From: Marsupella aquatica
Taxonomy: Eukaryota; Plantae; Marchantiophyta
Length of the DNA stretch: 64,000 nt
Direction: 5' to 3'
Assembly: GCA_973895155.1 (NCBI GenBank)
Contig: OZ316897.1
Coordinates: 15,251,375-15,315,374, forward strand
Shown here piece after piece: positions 37,073 through 46,405 of the stretch (positions within the stretch are counted from its first letter, which is position 1; the number at the start of each line of letters is the position of its first letter). A program made the translations under genes and the position numbers. The notes beneath the pieces were generated by a model. The model saw only the letters and a program-made list of their open reading frames with translations. It was not told the origin of the DNA and made no database searches.

Positions 37073-40000
37073 ATGGAGAGTTTTGAGGCAGCTGTTGCCT
37101 CCATCCCTCCAGCATCACACCTTGTCAGGCACCTGCATGTGAAGAGCAGGTTGCCCCGGGTATGTGCTCATCGTGCAATTTCTAAACCCAACTAGGGAGC
37201 GAAGCACCTAAGATAATGTTTGTTAACTTGAAAAGAATCCGATGTTGTAGACTTTTCATTACCATGAATACCTCTGAACGGTTGCAGTTGATTGAACCTT
37301 AGGCAAGTTGCGAGCAGGATTTGTAAAGCTTGGTCAGATTTCGTTGTCATTCATACAGTTTTCTGAAGGATGTTTTCTCTTGTACTGTCCAGAGAGACGG
37401 GGACGTGACAATCTGCACACAATGCTCACTTGACAGGTATAAACTCTTACTGGGGTCCTTCGGCGACAGCTTCATTCAAAATTTACTTATTTGGTCGACC
37501 ATGCAGCTCTTCATGCAATCCAACTTAGTTTTCATTATTATAGCATTTAGTGATTACAACAGCATCCAACTTCTCGCAATTACCAGCTTTGTATAGCCAT
37601 CTTTAAATCAGCGGACGGCGAGCATATGTCACAATAAGGAATCTCCAGCGGCATTTTGCAAGTCTGCTCCTGCCGGGCTCTCATATTTCCTTCCTTGCCC
37701 CGTTTCAAACTATTTCTATATTTGGTTTTCATAATCTTTTTTCAACTCAAGATTGCTGCTCCTTTACACTTGTTTACTTACTCTAATTGCAACATTTTCA
37801 ATCCTCAGATTGGAGAGGCTCGAGGCTCAGACGAACGCATGGAGCGGAGTGATATGTGCAGCTGTAATGTGCCCTTGTCCTTGTAGCGCAGACTCTCTGC
37901 TAGATGCCAAAGAGTGTATCTTGGCATTACATGGGCGTGTGGAGGCAAGGGCGGGTCCATGCCGGTTAGACATCATACTTGTTGCTCACCAACAGAAAAG
38001 AAATGCAAAAGCCTCACCTTGTCAGGATCCATGGCGATATCCTGTAAGTCTTCATGCCTTTCGTAACGGCCTGCGTCACAAAACGCTTTCTTTGAAGAAG
38101 TTGCTTCAATGGTGGTGTACGAGGTGTACCACCATTTCTTGCTACCTTGTAAGCTTGAGTGGTTACAGTTATATGACACCTCTTGTTGCTCATGGCCTCT
38201 CTGATACAGTGCCGTTTGTCCCTAGAGCAACCATACCCCATAACTATCACTTATGTTGGCATATCTGAATCCTGCCCCAATTTTTGGGATTTGTGGACTG
38301 CCAGTTTGATTCAATTCAAATAGGCATGAGAAGCTGTGGCCTGATGAGTTTATCAATTACCTAGCTTGGATTTTATTTATTTATTTTCCCGACGAAAGTT
38401 TTGGGGTCAGTCCATTCCGATTCAGAGAGCTGGAAATCTGGACATCGCTATGGCTGACTATAGGTATTCGGTGTTGGTTGCAGGTCAATAGTTTACGCAA
38501 TGTTGCTCTGCAATCCGCTGCCACTGAGCTGGTCATCGTGCTGGATGTGGATTTTCTTCCAGGTCTACCCTCTCATCCATTTATCGTAAAAATACTTTAG
38601 CTTATGATTGCTCATAGTTCTATCTGGAAGAAAATTACTGATATTTAACTTATTCAAGTCCCAAAACTAATTCACATGAGTGCTGACATACAGGTTTCGG
38701 CATCCAGGAGCAGCTATGGAAGATGGATGTATACTCTGGATATCTCCGTGCCTGCACAGACCTTAGGAGGGTTATTATTCTACCAGCGCTAGAGGAGTCA
38801 CCTGATCTAGAAGATTCAAATCCAGATTCAAGACCTTGGGAGAAAGATCATCTTCAAAGTGCTTTCCAGATTGTTTCTGGAAGTAAAGCCACTGTAGAGA
38901 ACTTGTGGACCCGCAGGAAACTGAGAACATTTGCAGTCGATAAATACCCACGAGGCCATGGGCCTACAGACACGGATCGGTGGGTCTCTTCAGCTGCAAC
39001 TTATGAGGTGCAGTACGAGGTGGACTATGAACCTTACTTTCTCTGTTCTCGTCGCCTGGTGCCGTGGTACGATGAACGTTTTACTGGTTACGGAAAGAAC
39101 AAAGTTATTCATGTGTTCCATACGGCAGTTTTGGACTTCCGGTTTTGGGTACATCCTGAGTGGTATGTGGTACACGTACACCACGAGGTTTCCAGGGCTT
39201 GTCAAGCAACACTGGGAAGCGATACCCTCGCCAGTACACGACTCTCTGACGTCAAACGTTTGTATGCTATTGCAAAGCACCAACTCTTGTCTCTAGCCAC
39301 TCACTCAGGGGTGCACCTGTCTCCAAATCCATGTGCTTGTACGGCTCCTAACACGTCAGTTCGTAGCACTACTTGGCTACCCTGGAAACGAGGACACGAC
39401 AAGCCCAGGGAGGAGCCAATGGGTCACTGGAGTCATGCAGACCAGCCTTCACCTTTGCTGTTACAAACAAGTAGTAAAAAAGTAAGCCCAAATTTCATTC
39501 AACGTAATGTCTTTTGTGTAACAGATCTCTTCACTTTCACAAAAATTGCTTTATTATACCTTCATCTGCTTCAACTATACTGAATGGCTGACTTAATTGT
39601 ACATTTCTTGAACAGTATATTGAGGCTCTCTATGATCTGCGTCACCACTTCTGTGCTCCAAAACTTCATCGAATAGCGATTCATTGCAGCCAATTAAAAC
39701 CAAACCTCAGGGACATCAGTCTTGTGACAGTGGCCACCGAAGATCGTCTTCAGCGCCTAGCAGCACAATGCCAGCGGTGGAAAGGAGTGATTTGTGCTGC
39801 AGTATATGCTCCTCCCAACAGTCATGTGAAGGATCTCAAAAGAAAAGTTCTGGAGCTACATCAGGAGGTTGAGAAAGCTGGCATATGCCGGCTAGATCTT
39901 ATTCTCATGGAATCAGCAAAGGTTGAAAAGAGGAAGTACATTGGGAGAAGAGCAGCATCGTCATATGATCTCTGTCCCATCAATGGATTACGAAATGCAG

Positions 40001-43000
40001 CCCTGAAACTTGCAACGACAGACCTTGTTTTGATTCTGGACGTTGATCTCCTTCCCACTCCGTCTCTCAACGGTTTGTATTCTCTCATCCTTATCAGAAA
40101 ACCTTGCGGTTGTACTTGTTTACATTCACCTGACGTCCAGGATACATGGAGAAAGGCAGCCTTCCCCAACTTACTTGAATAGAGCCTTCTCAGCCCATCA
40201 TCAATCCTGGTTTGCTCTTTAATTCCTCAAGGCCAATAGTACAGCTGTTCTAGCCTCAGACTCAGCTTGGGTTCTCAAGTGGCTCACATACTTGATAAAT
40301 GCTTGCAGAATGCTTCTTACGCGAGCAGCAGTACAAATGTCTGTTGCGCATGGCGGTGGAAGAGAGAACTGCTGTGGTGGTACCAAGTTTTGAGTACGCA
40401 GGCATGTCTCTGAACGCTTGGACTCGAAGTAAGCTTTCCTGATTTGAAAATCACCATCTTGGACAGTTCCAAAGGACTTCCGGGACAGGAAACTCCTAAT
40501 CATAAAGCCAAGGACTGCTTGAAAATAGTGGAATTGCAGAAAGGAAAGGCATGTCTGATCAATGAGTTGTGTCGTCCGTAACTACCCCTAATTTATTATT
40601 CACATCAGAGGAAACCTATACATTTAGATTCTGTTTATTCCATTTTGGTGGTCGTCAATTACCGTTTGAATTAGGGCAATCTCCTCAATTTTCCGTCTTG
40701 TTGAATGGAGTGCAGATGGGAGAGTTGAAGAATATCCTGCCTCCCAACCAGCTAAGGAGTCTAACTCAGGGCTTGAGATGGGGAACGAAAAGAAGCCAGT
40801 CGAGAAAGGATCCACCTTGCAAGAAGTGAGCCACATATCTGATACACTGGAAATGACGGGAAAAGGCGTTCATACCATTTGCAAGGGCTTGGCCTCTGGT
40901 AGCCTTCGTGGCTTCCACGTGAACCATTATCCCGCAGGACACAGTCCCACTGATTTTGAGAAATGGAGAGACCTCTGTGAAAGTTCTAATCGGGCAGATA
41001 GTCCATGCTGTGAAGTTTGTAGATCGTATAACATAAAATTTGCAGAGGGGTTTGAGCCTTTTGTCATCTGTTCACGCAAGCTCATTCCGAGTTTTGATGA
41101 GCGTTTTCGGGGCTATGGCTTTGACAAAGTTAGTTTCTTCTATCACCTTCATCAGAGTGGGTTTGGATTCCGTGTACTTTTGCACAGCGTTTGTCTAGAC
41201 GTTCCACATCCGAAGTCCCAAGATTGGAGGAAGACATTTGGTCCAGCCTCAGATCCTTGGCAGGTAAACCTTCTAAAACTTTCACAAATGTACATGTGGT
41301 GGTCTTCTTGCTGTTCTCATTTGATCCAGCCAGTTCAAGCCCCGAATTACTCTGATGAAGCTTAATATATTATCTTACAGCAAAGCCGTGTGAAGGCCAT
41401 GTACCAGCGGGCTAAGCGAGAAATTCGTGTTGTAACTGGAGGATCAGCTTTGGCCAACTATGTCGTTGAGGAGTTGCCTGTACACTTGATGGGTAAAGCA
41501 TCAGCAGGGCTTCTCTCTAGAAGCAGCAAAAAGTTCCGCTCTGTATCTTTGGAAAGACATAAGAGATCGACTCTAGACGGACTGCAGCTGGCATGGCAGG
41601 GAGTCATTCGTCGCCAAGACGGGAATGCCGATACTTCCTTAGAATTCCATGACGAGGGAAAATCGTCCCATGAAGAGGAGAAATCGTCCCCCTTGCCCAC
41701 GCCCTGTTCTGAGGAGGAAATGAGTTCTATGGGTAGTGGAATATCAGGACTTGCTGAGAGAGATCTTGCAGGCAAGGGAATCCCCAGCTGTTTTGGATGG
41801 AGCAAGTTTCGGGCACATGGACATGCAAGTTTACCCGCAAGTGAATCAAAGTCTTTCCAGTCAATGGACTGGGTGAGAACGTTGGAGGAGTTTGAGTGGG
41901 ATAGAACAGGATGGAAGCTCAAGTGTAGTACAGACAGCCTTTCAAATTGCAGTGTTGTCAAGGCTCCTGATCCCATAAGTGAGAAGGAATGGTTCCAACC
42001 TGGAGGGTACTGGCTAAGAATTTCAATGTCTGCGGGTTCTTGGAGTCCTCAAGCTTCTCGGTTAGCAGGTATCACAACAGGGGGAGTTTCTGTTCGTTCA
42101 GTACTACCCATCAGGTAATATTAGTTTTCCTACAGTATTGACGTCCTGGCCATTTCCAACTTTTTCCCTTAAAGATGTGGATTTTTCTACTTCGTGTCGG
42201 TGTCTGCAGTTTCCCAGTTAGATTCCTTATGTTTTCCTTTGTTGTGGCACAGGGCTGTAAAGGAAGTGGTCGTACGCTACATGGTTCGATTTCCTAGCTC
42301 ATTCGAGTGGGTTAAAGGTGGAACTCTTCCAGGTGTCTGGGTTGATGATGTTGTGCAAGGCAACTTTGGGTGGCGCAGAGGTGGGGAGGGACATCTGAAC
42401 ACTACCCTGATGGGTCTTGCACGCATAGAAAGTGAACAACAAAAGCCTTCTCTCACCAAAAAGACCTCCAAATTGTCAAGGCCATTTTACTTTGTGCCTG
42501 AGCAATGGCATGCCCTCCAATTAATTGTCTCAGTGGTTGATCAGACAGATACCAGTGAGCGAGATAGAAGTTGTGATGAGAGCGACAAGCAATTAATCAG
42601 TAAACGAACGTTGTCTTCTCACACCCTTGGGATTGAGAGCATTCGAGATGGTGCTGTGGTTGAGTTACGCGCATTTGTTGACTTTGAATTGGTATCCACA
42701 ATAAAATATCCATACCGCGGAGGAGGTTCGCCCAATGTGACAAGAACCAGCTCAGATCCTGGGGCATCCATGGGCCTTCTGCTGTCTTGCTACTTTGGAG
42801 GAAAGACACAAGATTGGGCCGCTACAGAGGATACTCACGTTGATTTTAGCCAAGTAAGTATCTCCTCTCATCAAATCAAGACGTCTCGATACGTTATGTG
42901 ATGTGACCAGGCTCGCTATTTGAATACCTTTGTGGCGACCTACCGTAGGAGAAACTGCTGTAACATTGCATATTTGGAAAAGTGGAACTCATGAACCTTT

Positions 43001-43033
43001 TCCTGCGTGCAGTTTGAAATTTGGACTAACTGA
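37073..43033 (+). CDS. GT49-GT49-PL14 fusion protein, about 1228 aa; exons 37073-37159, 37393-37436, 37809-38043, 38484-38562, 38694-39481, 39616-40072, 40309-40401, 40716-41263, 41381-42114, 42253-42853, 43013-43033
   Basis: Two full GT49 motif sets (DVTICTQCSLDRL / DISLVTVATEDRL; YPVNSLRNVAL / PINGLRNAAL; LDVDFLP / LDVDLLP; YEPYF..YDERFTGYGKNK / FEPFV..FDERFRGYGFDK). Then PL14 motifs YMVRFPSSFEWVKGGTLPG and SCYFGG...WAA. Intron phases are mutually consistent; the start codon is uncertain. Confidence 0.85.
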
Positions 43034-44617: not shown

Positions 44618-46405
44618 CTACCCCGGAAGCTTCTGTCTGACAAGCCCCTTCAAGAAGTCAAAACTATTTCCATCAGGATGAAGTTCATACTGCTCACCTA
44701 CATCATCTGACGCCAACAGGTAACCCATAGGCGTTAAACCCTGGATTGTGACTGCAACATGTGAAATACCTGAACTCCCTGTTTCCTTCTCCTCCAATAC
44801 CACACTTTGTCCAGTGTGGAGCCATTTCCTATAGTAGGCCTCCTGCAGCGGTAAGAACCCTTGCTCTTGAAATATCTTGTTTAGAATCTCAAACCTGGAC
44901 ATAATGGATGCCAAAACAAGCTCCGGTTGAATGGCACTTGACCCTCCCTGAAGCTCTTCGATGAGGGCATCGAGACAAGTTGTGGGCTCCCTGTTACCTA
45001 CATTTAGGCCAACTCCCACTACGATGTTGAAGGTCTTGGCACGGTAGGTTGACGTGCATAAGACACCTCCAATTTTGAGTCCCTTGGCATACAAGTCGTT
45101 TGGCCATTTTATCCTCACATCCGGGACAGAAATTCTACTGGCTTTGCAGGCTTCGTCGATTCCTTCAGTCACGGCAAGAGACACAACATATTGTAGGAAG
45201 GGCACCATCCGTCCATTCGTCATCTGAGTCGTATATGAGAACATGAGACAACCCTTCGGGGATTGCCACATATTTCCTCCGCGTCCTCTCCCTTGCAGCT
45301 GAGCACCAGCTATACATATTGTCCCAGCGGGAAATGAATGAAAATTCTGTGAAAGTAGGGTATGTGTTGATGGGATAAGGGGCGAATACAGGACCAACCT
45401 TCCGAACTGAGATGTATCGAGATTCTTTAAATATTCGTTCACATCAAAAGCTTCTCTCCCACTTGTATCCGTGCTTTCCGCTGCTGTTGTTACTACAGCA
45501 CCACCAGGTAGGTGCAATTCGTCTTCCCTTTTGAGCTTCTCGACATATTCTGCTTCTGCAGAGCCCTTTGAGGCGAACTGGATCACACACACTGAGTTAC
45601 CACTGCCTGCTTCTCCTAATATGTAGCTTTCCGTCTTCTCTGCACCCTTTCCTTGTTCAGATTCACTAGCTTGTCTGGTCTCAGTCTCGCCTGGGTCTTC
45701 TGCAGGCATTATATCAGCCTTCTCAACTTCTCTGGACTTGACCTTTCCTCCATCCAAGCTTGGCAGTTCTTCCCCTGTCTGCACATCAAGCCTCCCTGGC
45801 GAATTTTGATTTTCAGCATTATGCACATTGTCCTTGACTCTGCGTCGCGTCTCACTAGCTATACAATTAGCTGGGGTTGACACATTATCTCTACCTTCAG
45901 TCTTGCCCACTATCCCAGCGCGGAGTTCTGGAGGGTACAATTGTTCTAATTTGCGCACATTCTCCTCCAGCTGACTTGGAGCATTCTGACTTTTCGTTTC
46001 GCCTAAACTTTCTTCACTCCCCTCAAATATCCCTGACTGCTTCACTTCTGGAAAGCTACCTGGGATTGACGCAGGCTCCTTGCCCTCAGTCTGTCCTACT
46101 ATTCCAATATGGACATCTGACCCGAATGATTCCTCCAATAAAGCAACATTTTCCTCAAGCTTGCTTCGAGCTTGAGGATTGCTACGCTCCCCAGCCTCTT
46201 GCATATTCTTGGAAGCCTCCCCTGAGACACAAATACCGTCAATGGCCTCACGGCCAGTATCTCGAACAGCCTCACCCTCCAAATCGTGGGATTGCCCTTC
46301 GTAGTTTAACAAGGAACGAACCCTCCCAGCTTGCTGTTGAATCCCATGTATAAAATTCGGCCCACCCTTTCCTATTGCGCACTGAATGAGTCGTAGAGTC
46401 TGCAC
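44618..46405 (-). CDS. HCS: Biotin--protein ligase / holocarboxylase synthetase with long N-terminal extension
   Basis: QLQGRGRGGNMWQSPKGCLMFS, IKWPNDLY, KIGGVL, GVGLN, YELHPDGNSFDFLKGLV. Start unresolved: first ATG at 46204, or ATG at 46804-46802 spliced to the acceptor at about 46400. Confidence 0.93.
   Translation of the reverse strand: MQTLRLIQCAIGKGGPNFIHGIQQQAGRVRSLLNYEGQSHDLEGEAVRDTGREAIDGICVSGEASKNMQEAGERSNPQARSKLEENVALLEESFGSDVHIGIVGQTEGKEPASIPGSFPEVKQSGIFEGSEESLGETKSQNAPSQLEENVRKLEQLYPPELRAGIVGKTEGRDNVSTPANCIASETRRRVKDNVHNAENQNSPGRLDVQTGEELPSLDGGKVKSREVEKADIMPAEDPGETETRQASESEQGKGAEKTESYILGEAGSGNSVCVIQFASKGSAEAEYVEKLKREDELHLPGGAVVTTAAESTDTSGREAFDVNEYLKNLDTSQFGRLVLYSPLIPSTHTLLSQNFHSFPAGTICIAGAQLQGRGRGGNMWQSPKGCLMFSYTTQMTNGRMVPFLQYVVSLAVTEGIDEACKASRISVPDVRIKWPNDLYAKGLKIGGVLCTSTYRAKTFNIVVGVGLNVGNREPTTCLDALIEELQGGSSAIQPELVLASIMSRFEILNKIFQEQGFLPLQEAYYRKWLHTGQSVVLEEKETGSSGISHVAVTIQGLTPMGYLLASDDVGEQYELHPDGNSFDFLKGLVRQKLPG

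Follow-up and report, generated by a model that had tools for sequence, protein, structure and literature searches.

Two GT49 domains and a PL14-like lyase-fold domain joined in a single predicted liverwort protein

Is a single liverwort gene able to join two GT49 glycosyltransferase domains to a polysaccharide lyase fold, and what might its product make? The question arose from a first-pass annotation of a 64,000-nt stretch of Marsupella aquatica DNA (contig OZ316897.1; hereafter the window), which had proposed a splice-consistent reading frame of 11 exons. An exon-by-exon check bore this out: the gene model (37073-43033, + strand) contained 11 exons and 1237 codons with 0 internal stops, all ten introns were of the GT..AG type, all split codons were sense, and the coding total of 3714 nt corresponded to 1237 aa and the TGA stop codon (43031-43033; Table 1). 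Full-length liverwort proteins aligned collinearly from 37073 to 42862. The N-terminus in exon 1 was conserved in Riccia, Marchantia, and Calypogeia proteins, exon 2 matched the N-terminal GT49 motif of Riccia as well as Calypogeia (alignment 37390-37449), and identities to Calypogeia were 73–77% in exon 3 (82% to P0097) and 92–96% in exon 4. The least certain boundary was the donor of exon 7, where the Calypogeia model is ~10 aa shorter; this exon had 50–67% identity to liverwort proteins (tblastn). The C-terminus in exon 11 was matched by F-E-I-W-T-D in Calypogeia and F-Q-I-W-T-D in Riccia fluitans. At the sequence level, the splice-consistent frame, the domain matches, and the collinear liverwort proteins were far beyond chance and confirmed a real gene model.

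Table 1 Exons of the gene model and GT49 profile matches in the window. The Pfam search was run on exon pieces, with a cut-off of 27 bits for PF13896.
Feature	Positions	Strand	Description
Exon 1	37073..37159	+	Start codon, 29-aa N-terminus without hydrophobic anchor; donor GT
Exon 2	37393..37436	+	GT49 domain 1 begins (D-V-T-I-C-T-Q-C-S-L-D)
Exon 3	37809..38043	+	GT49 domain 1, N-terminal part
Exon 4	38484..38562	+	DxD strand of GT49 domain 1, DVD 38544-38552
Exon 5	38694..39481	+	GT49 domain 1, C-terminal half, and inter-domain segment
Exon 6	39616..40072	+	GT49 domain 2, N-terminal half; DVD 40039-40047
Exon 7	40309..40428	+	GT49 domain 2, middle
Exon 8	40716..41263	+	GT49 domain 2, C-terminal half
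Exon 9	41381..42114	+	GT49 domain 2 tail, 143-aa Ser-rich linker, first PL14-like strands
Exon 10	42253..42853	+	Body of PL14-like beta-jelly roll; Thr codon 42323-42325
Exon 11	43013..43033	+	Final six residues F-E-I-W-T-N, then TGA
PF13896 Glyco_transf_49	38478-38597		24.6 bits (cut-off 27), DxD strand
PF13896	38723-39580		66.9 bits
PF13896	39724-40179		55.1 bits
PF13896	40778-41362		64.5 bits

The closest relatives were liverworts, in agreement with the non-seed plant origin suggested earlier. The same architecture was found in Marchantia polymorpha, two Riccia species, and Calypogeia fissa, with the full fusion present in M. polymorpha P0094 (1303 aa), Riccia P0002 and P0073, and Calypogeia P0075 and P0097. 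It was also present in further sequences (P0006, P0011, P0089, and P0016; algal-like sequences are among those that carry it) and in P0013 and P0072, which come from an MMETSP marine-transcriptome source. Public labels of the relatives were "hypothetical", "LARGE-like", or "PL14 domain-containing"; M. polymorpha MARPO_0100s0035, which carries the architecture, is annotated "LARGE-like" or "glycosyltransferase-like protein LARGE". The first-pass annotation knew of no described example of the architecture. It is in fact not unique to this genome, and the family is conserved and already in public databases; our literature search found no functional study of a GT49-GT49-PL14 family. Identity to Marchantia was 50–64% in the PL14-like domain and 46–61% in the GT49 exons, compared to 10% in the linker, which indicates purifying selection on a PL14-like domain that is as well conserved as the two transferases.

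The junction between the transferase and lyase-fold parts lies within exon 9, a single open frame of 244 codons that runs from the tail of GT49 domain 2 into the N-terminal PL14 strands. This exon also carries a conserved post-GT49 helix with the motif R-V-K-A-x-Y-Q-R-x-K-R-E, as seen in the alignment of orthologues. In the orthologue P0075, the GT49 domain-2 envelope, defined with a profile built from these same proteins, ends at residue 806, and the Pfam PL14 match begins at residue 993. Because exon 9 alone holds both domain ends in one open frame, the GT49-PL14 fusion is not an annotation artefact. Open exon 9 and the collinear orthologues thus support the predicted single polypeptide, in which a C-terminal PL14 fold follows two GT49 domains.

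Two GT49 domains with intact DxD motifs had been recognized in the first reading, and the PF13896 matches and the two DVD motifs in Table 1 agree with this. The full orthologues scored 249–258 bits against PF13896, in two or three stretches, and the DVD of both domains was invariant across five orthologues. Exon 5 matched the LARGE1 GlcA-T domain with an E value of 4.9e-17 and retained the H-x-x-H equivalents, and exon 8 matched LARGE1 with an E value of 3.4e-09. The DVD of domain 2 aligned with the D-I-D strand of LARGE1, whose DxD is Asp563-x-Asp565 (PMC9746966). We thus recognize two paralogous GT49 domains of the LARGE/B4GAT1 type (GT-A, inverting), each with the DxD of its predicted metal/nucleotide-sugar site intact. 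In the phylogenetic tree, the family formed a separate GT49 clade outside the LARGE clade. The domain-1 clade and the domain-2 clade each included liverwort, brown-alga, and further sequences, which implies an ancient GT49 duplication after which neither copy was lost. The GT8 domain PF01501 was absent from every exon and orthologue searched with Pfam, while the animal LARGE2 matches do carry it.

For the C-terminal domain, all PL14 signature strings listed by the first-pass annotation were located in the sequence, and its assignment to PL14 held up in both profile and structure searches. Exon 10 alone matched PF21294 Polysacc_lyase_14 at 42194-42898 with 63.1 bits (gathering score 27), and the orthologues scored 60–61 bits. 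An AlphaFold2 model spanning exon 10 only (pLDDT 74, pTM 0.70) was matched by Foldseek to 5GMT (E 9e-07), 3GNE (4e-05), and also 3A0N. In VIA-align, PL14 and PL36 lyases were the best matches of this model (Z 10.6–11.4), with Z of 11.1 for 3GNE and 10.6 for 5GMT, whereas unrelated jelly rolls reached at most 8.7. The rmsd to vAL-1 (chlorovirus, 3A0N/3GNE) and AkAly30 (Aplysia, 5GMT) was about 2.7–3.1 Å over 142–147 residues. The model thus shows the C-terminal domain to be a predicted beta-jelly roll of the PL14 lyase family, to which both of these enzymes belong by Pfam family and fold. Unlike these two lyases, which are free or secreted, the liverwort domain is joined to transferases.

The residues needed for cleavage have nevertheless been lost from this fold. 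The vAL-1 enzyme, which acts on the glucuronate polymer in Chlorella walls, requires both Lys197 and Ser219 (PMC13709232), and residue mapping (chain offset 105) placed these two residues in the GGK and S-x-R motifs, respectively. The catalytic Lys of GGK is replaced in the window by Thr, giving G-G-T-L-P-G, and the Gly-rich loop that follows is deleted. Alignment to vAL-1 found neither S-x-R (Ser219-x-Arg221) nor Y-x-Y (Tyr233-x-Tyr235) in the PL14-like domain of the window, the aligned residues being Gln/Asn and Asn/Thr, although the Ser219 mapping crosses the loop deletion and is less certain than that of the Lys. GG[T/A]LPG was found in 20 of 20 GT49-clade sequences, and [FW]SxRxMW in none of the GT49-linked PL14 members compared. 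In contrast, GGKLPG was kept by nearly all free PL14s and by a GT2-fused PL14, most of which also had [FW]S/TxRxMW. Loss of beta-elimination activity on uronic-acid polymers is therefore predicted. Since the lyase residues have been lost and yet conservation equals that of the GT domains, the PL14-like domain is probably a glycan-binding module. Of the two roles first suggested for it, product binding fits best.

The reading we prefer, with a probability of roughly 55%, is a single gene whose soluble product of ~1237 aa carries two GT49 domains that would act in turn to build a glucuronic acid-containing glycan and a dead-lyase domain that would serve as a tethered lectin. UDP-GlcA is, to our knowledge, the donor of all characterised GT49 enzymes, and a GlcA-containing product is inferred for this reason. 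It is the donor of LARGE1 (PMC9746966). The UDP-GlcA donor and a glucuronan- or matriglycan-like product are thus proposed here from family membership; the polymer could be glucuronan-like or alternating. The lectin may keep either the uronic-acid acceptor or the growing product close to the active sites without cutting it, which would contribute to targeting or processivity. Within the green lineage, the family is a candidate for the synthesis of glucuronic-acid glycans.

Known systems resemble parts of this arrangement. The animal matriglycan polymerases LARGE1 and LARGE2 (GT8 + GT49, type II Golgi proteins) are likewise bifunctional polypeptides with two GT-A domains, and the LARGE1 GlcA-T domain is homologous to the liverwort GT49, with the DxD and the His708 equivalent in common. 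Compared to LARGE, the liverwort protein has a second GT49 in place of the GT8 xylosyltransferase domain, lacks the transmembrane anchor and coiled-coil stem, and has an extra C-terminal PL14-like domain. The beta-1,4-glucuronyltransferase B4GAT1, a single-domain type II Golgi protein, belongs to the same CAZy/Pfam family (GT49, PF13896) and has a DxD; it is likened here by family, from outside the compared sequence set. By analogy only, E. coli K4 chondroitin polymerase (K4CP) and the Pasteurella synthases make alternating GlcA polymers with two GT-A domains on one soluble, anchor-less polypeptide, but they are bacterial GT2/GT45 rather than GT49 enzymes and lack a lyase-fold domain. The GlcA-T domain of LARGE1 has its closest structural homologue in K4CP (PMC9746966). 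In the green lineage, Volvox carteri InvC (BAH03159), the only genetically studied GT49 found in our literature search, is LARGE-like and needed to enlarge the glycoprotein vesicle around the embryo (PMC5919742, PMC6560780, bioRxiv 10.1101/2021.02.16.431445). InvC, likened by its published description and not by sequence, provides a link between GT49 and the glycans of the extracellular matrix in green algae.

A Kyte-Doolittle scan detected neither a signal anchor nor a transmembrane segment in any of the exons or orthologues: the maximum over 19 residues was 0.55 in exon 1, no 19-residue stretch reached 1.6 in any exon, and the only stretches reaching 1.6 in the orthologues were DxD beta-strands. 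The missing anchor sets the family apart from every characterised GT49 enzyme and makes a role in the cell wall or matrix less likely, and a Golgi or matrix "matriglycan-like" role is therefore not simply transferable from LARGE. Synthesis might take place in soluble form or at a cytosolic face, by analogy with bacterial tandem GT-A polymerases, or else in the Golgi. The same observation, made in every member, favours a rather unlikely alternative in which the GT49 domains, possibly with another UDP-sugar, glycosylate a cytosolic or nuclear protein, a lipid, or a small molecule and the PL14-like domain is a jelly roll for general binding of ligands or proteins. A GT49 clade apart from LARGE could likewise mean a different specificity, and galectins and LG domains also match the exon 10 model, at lower scores. 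However, the C-terminal domain is by sequence specifically PL14, a family associated with uronate polymers, and the characterised GT49 enzymes, as far as is known, agree in using UDP-GlcA (PMC9746966 for LARGE1). An independent second fusion also points to polysaccharide chemistry: in the metagenomic protein P0028, a GT2 glycosyltransferase stands N-terminal to a canonical PL14 domain. Unlike the liverwort protein, P0028 is of the membrane-embedded synthase type with three hydrophobic segments, and both GGKLPG and L-S-T-R-L-M-W-R are present in its PL14 domain, which by these motifs is probably a true lyase.

Alginate and cellulose synthesis systems pair with the trimming enzymes AlgL and BcsZ, and P0028, with its catalytic residues, shows that a synthase can be paired with a lyase. 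It is nevertheless improbable that the liverwort domain still cleaves through other residues, so that the protein both builds and trims a polymer for length control or release. The PL14 fold and its cleft-forming motifs are retained, and how PL14 enzymes catalyse cleavage is only partly understood (PMC13709232), but S-x-R and Y-x-Y are missing and the GGK Lys, catalytic in vAL-1 and at the same position in PL36 Aly36B (Lys143; PMC13709232), is Thr or Ala throughout the clade.

We consider it just as improbable that only one GT49 is catalytic and adds a single residue type, the other being a structural or acceptor-binding pseudo-transferase. Domain 1 retains the equivalents of both LARGE1 His705 and His708 (H-V-H-H), whereas domain 2 retains only that of His708; because the His705 position is Asp here and Asp or Asn among the sequences aligned, its metal site would differ from that of LARGE1. 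A tandem glycosyltransferase with one inactive domain is known in EXTL3 (PMC9178029). Against this, distant members keep DVD, E-P-[YF], D-E-R-F-x-G-[YF]-G, and the equivalent of His708 unchanged in both domains, and both domain clades are conserved.

Finally, one public annotation, that of M. paleacea, divides the orthologue between the adjacent models Mapa_007204 (737 aa) and Mapa_007205 (506 aa). This would suit two neighbouring genes, one with tandem GT49 domains and the other PL14-like, that homology-guided modelling had joined by mistake. We regard such a merger as very improbable given that exon 9 is stop-free across the junction, that five other annotations, continuous ORFs on short contigs, and MMETSP entries give one protein, and that there is neither need nor evidence for an in-frame ATG preceded by space for a promoter.

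The GT49-PL14 gene was read as 11 exons on the plus strand, without internal stops and with only sense codons where a codon is split between exons. All ten introns (117–440 nt) were bounded by GT..AG, and the coding length of 3714 nt corresponded to 1237 aa followed by TGA. The window sequence was queried one exon at a time, while questions concerning the whole protein were put to the liverwort orthologues P0075 and P0097 (Calypogeia fissa), P0094 (Marchantia polymorpha), and P0002 (Riccia). The model is least secure at the junction between exons 7 and 8, since the donor of exon 7 and the acceptor of exon 8 both sit in a weakly conserved loop of GT49 domain 2, where the Calypogeia model is ~10 residues shorter.

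Exons of the GT49-PL14 gene in the window
Exon	Position	Strand	Basis
E1	37073-37159	+	sequence reading and exon-by-exon check
E2	37393-37436	+	sequence reading and exon-by-exon check
E3	37809-38043	+	sequence reading and exon-by-exon check
E4	38484-38562	+	sequence reading and exon-by-exon check
E5	38694-39481	+	sequence reading and exon-by-exon check
E6	39616-40072	+	sequence reading and exon-by-exon check
E7	40309-40428	+	sequence reading and exon-by-exon check
E8	40716-41263	+	sequence reading and exon-by-exon check
E9	41381-42114	+	sequence reading and exon-by-exon check
E10	42253-42853	+	sequence reading and exon-by-exon check
E11	43013-43033	+	sequence reading and exon-by-exon check

The first-pass annotation had proposed a single polypeptide rather than neighbouring genes, and exon 9 largely bore this out. 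This exon is one uninterrupted frame of 244 codons, which starts with the conserved helix closing GT49 domain 2, continues through a 143-aa Ser-rich linker, and ends with the first PL14 strands. In a Calypogeia orthologue, the envelope of GT49 domain 2 reached residue 806 with a GT49 profile made from these proteins, and the Pfam PL14 match began at residue 993. Because exon 9 is open from the GT49 tail to the PL14 strands, there is no stop, intergenic gap or obligatory second start codon between the two parts. Full-length proteins collinear with all exons were found in Riccia fluitans (KAL2633662.1, 1327 aa), Riccia sorocarpa (KAL3694041.1, 1384 aa), Marchantia polymorpha (MARPO_0100s0035/PTQ32327.1, 1303 aa), and Calypogeia fissa (CAM6107877.1 and CAM6127434.1, 1233 and 1237 aa), the last being the nearest among the full-length liverwort proteins with 66–96% identity per exon. 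This level of identity places the window in a different liverwort, probably a leafy one, rather than in C. fissa. Only the annotation of Marchantia paleacea divided the orthologue into two adjacent models, Mapa_007204 (P0074, 737 aa), which carries the GT49 domains, and Mapa_007205 (P0095, 506 aa), which carries the PL14-like part and aligns at 41372-42862 of the window. This split is probably a matter of annotation and not of biology. In the Riccia sorocarpa model (P0073), an insert of ~35 aa directly after the DxD motif of domain 1 and a changed C-terminus, both absent from the other species, are probably retained intron sequence.

The GT49 and PL14 combination was also present in the database relatives P0006, P0011, P0089, and P0016, which are continuous ORFs on short contigs (1333 aa on a contig of 4407 nt for P0006), and likewise in the MMETSP marine-transcriptome entries P0013 and P0072. 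Word-indexed homology searches with family profiles added no named algal protein with the full GT49-GT49-PL14 architecture. The only named carrier found outside liverworts was CYMTET_31320 of the prasinophyte green alga Cymbomonas tetramitiformis (P0010, 558 aa), which bears a PL14-like domain with the Lys-less G-G-T-L-P-G motif and may be a partial gene model. Another apparent carrier, P0079, was rejected, as its G-G-T-L-P-G was a chance match within a leucine-rich repeat. The 1512-aa protein P0076 of the brown alga Scytosiphon promiscuus has tandem GT49 domains; about 700 of its C-terminal residues had no assignment, and no PL14-like domain was detectable in it. Three Logan contigs (P0001, P0070, and P0071; 2–2.8 kb) showed 64–67% identity to exon 10 and ran past the exon-10 donor into intron-like sequence, as does the window ORF 42194-42901, indicating that they are genomic pieces from a related species and not spliced transcripts.

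The presence of two GT49 domains with intact DxD motifs was confirmed. Pfam found PF13896 (GT49) twice on open pieces, each time split between an N-terminal half with the DxD and a C-terminal half, and the DVD motifs lie at 38544-38552 in domain 1 and 40039-40047 in domain 2. Exon 5 matched the GlcA-transferase domain of LARGE1 (E 4.9e-17), as did exons 6 and 8, and the DVD of domain 2 aligned with the D-I-D strand of LARGE1, which is its Asp563-x-Asp565 DXD motif (PMC9746966). The equivalent of LARGE1 His708 was retained in both domains, and that of His705 was His in domain 1 and Asp in domain 2 (Asn in Riccia). Across five distant orthologues, the DVD motif, the P-I-N-x-L-R-N strand, E-P-[YF], D-E-R-F-x-G-[YF]-G, and the final His were invariant in both domains.

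When 28 GT49 domains were placed in a maximum-likelihood tree, all domain-1 copies fell into one group (support 82/87) and all domain-2 copies into a second (92/80; inner node 96/93), each including liverwort sequences, other database sequences, and one domain of Scytosiphon P0076. Taken together, these groups had support of 86/94 and were separate from animal LARGE. As both groups span liverwort to brown-alga sequences, the duplication is old and both copies were retained, which argues that both are functional with different roles. Unlike LARGE, the liverwort family has no GT8 domain, and it is therefore not orthologous to LARGE despite the LARGE name that NCBI gives to the Marchantia protein.

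The C-terminal domain matched PL14 in sequence and in its predicted fold, as first proposed. PF21294 (PL14) scored 63.1 bits on the exon-10 piece, above its cut-off of 27. Exon 10 was modelled with AlphaFold2 from a 23-sequence alignment (pLDDT 74, pTM 0.70), and this model had its best Foldseek matches in the PL14 lyases AkAly30 of Aplysia (5GMT, E 9e-07) and vAL-1 of a chlorovirus (3GNE/3A0N). With VIA-align, the model gave Z scores of 11.4 to the PL36 lyase Aly36B, 11.1 to vAL-1, and 10.6 to AkAly30 (2.7–3.1 Å over 142–147 residues), compared to no higher than 8.7 for unrelated jelly rolls. A phmmer search of PDB sequences with exon 10 alone returned only weak matches (Aly36B, E 2), and AkAly30 and vAL-1 were reached by sequence with the family profile. 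A match to interpain A in the same phmmer search (E 0.005) was judged spurious.

The residues on which lyase activity depends are missing from this fold. Lys197 and Ser219 are essential in vAL-1, and the equivalent single Lys143 is the acid/base of Aly36B (reviewed in PMC13709232). Profile alignment to 3A0N (chain offset 105) identified Lys197 as the Lys of the G-G-K motif, Ser219 and Arg221 as the S-x-R preceding M-W, and Tyr233 and Tyr235 as the Y-x-Y following it. The window domain reads G-G-T-L-P-G (Thr codon 42323-42325), lacks the Gly-rich loop after this motif, and carries Gln/Asn and Asn/Thr at the S-x-R and Y-x-Y positions. Throughout the GT49-linked clade (20 sequences including fragments), the motif was GG[T/A]LPG and S-x-R-x-M-W was absent; nearly all free PL14s had GGKLPG and most had [FW]S/TxRxMW. 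By the known rules, the domain is thus predicted not to be a competent lyase.

It is nevertheless under constraint, since its segments were 50–64% identical between the window and Marchantia, comparable to the GT49 exons (46–61%), whereas the linker was only 10% identical. The simplest reading of a lyase fold that is conserved yet catalytically disabled is a putative binding module for the type of polymer its ancestors cut. Of the functions considered for the domain, product binding, one of the two options in the first-pass annotation, fits a conserved fold without lyase residues best and is predicted from sequence, whereas lyase competence is unlikely without the GGK Lys, S-x-R, and Y-x-Y. 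A complex prediction for GT49 domain 2 (445-810) and the PL14-like domain (950-1233) of Calypogeia gave no answer (score 0.00) and is evidence neither way. Separately, the ENA metagenomic protein P0028 (777 aa) joins a membrane-type GT2 synthase domain, which has three hydrophobic segments, to a canonical PL14 that has the Lys of GGKLPG and S-x-R-x-M-W. Transferase and lyase are thus fused in a second way in this protein, which is possibly a synthase with a built-in trimming lyase.

LARGE1 is a type II Golgi protein (PMC9746966). No 19-residue stretch with Kyte-Doolittle hydropathy of at least 1.6 was found in any window exon, and the only stretches reaching 1.6 in the orthologues were the DxD beta-strands. 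GT49 domain 1 begins ~30 residues past the Met in the liverworts and in the distant P0006. A missed 5' exon is conceivable, but it would need to be missing in every species. By default, the GT49-PL14 protein is predicted to be soluble, and without an anchor the liverwort family cannot be taken to share the Golgi and matrix setting of LARGE. The predicted soluble protein would resemble K4CP and other tandem GT-A polymerases of bacteria, and K4CP is also structurally the nearest relative of the GlcA-transferase domain of LARGE1 (PMC9746966).

In the mechanism that we propose, the two GT49 domains would add sugars in turn, and the PL14-like domain, tethered by a flexible linker, would hold a uronic-acid acceptor or product. 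The donor would be UDP-GlcA, giving GlcA, which is to our knowledge the sole GT49 chemistry. PL14 subfamilies include endo-beta-1,4-glucuronan lyases (PMC11890756), vAL-1 attacks a glucuronate polymer in the Chlorella wall (PMC13709232), and the Volvox LARGE-like GT49 protein InvC is required for an extracellular glycoprotein vesicle to enlarge (PMC5919742, PMC6560780). These facts are circumstantial links to the proposed mechanism. Our broader reading, to which we give a probability of roughly 0.15, is that the family could be a synthase of green-lineage wall or mucilage polymers of the beta-glucuronan type that vAL-1 degrades: a soluble tandem GT49 polymerase acting in the manner of bacterial capsule polymerases, with a domesticated, dead lyase of matching type as product clamp, kept in liverworts and lost in other land plants.

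The first-pass annotation knew of no described GT49-GT49-PL14 architecture. This holds for the literature, as searches on GT49+PL14, GT49+Marchantia, and PL14+glucuronan+glycosyltransferase found no published description or study, but the proteins themselves are already deposited for Marchantia polymorpha, Riccia, and Calypogeia. Public databases hold the combination solely as hypothetical, 'LARGE-like' or 'PL14 domain-containing' proteins. The component families are thus known, and the fusion is conserved and already annotated in a model liverwort. We know of no GT49 chemistry other than animal matriglycan synthesis. When the glycosyltransferases of green and red algae were surveyed in 2013, GT49 was listed among the families lacking plant entries (PMC3797821). 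If the proposed mechanism is true, MARPO_0100s0035 would be a knockout-ready candidate for a GlcA-glycan pathway without a seed-plant counterpart, a polysaccharide lyase would have been recruited as a binding module by the matching synthase, and eukaryotes would have a tandem GT-A enzyme without a membrane anchor. If the protein instead acted in the cytosol as a glycosyltransferase on a different acceptor, this would still be new for GT49.

The GT49-PL14 gene stands isolated in the window. Upstream of it to 31.3 kb, no assignable ORF of 70 aa or more was found. Downstream and tail to tail with it, a minus-strand ORF at 44618-46405 (595 aa) belongs to the biotin/lipoate protein ligase family (PF03099, 107.6 bits) and is probably a gene of the holocarboxylase-synthetase type.
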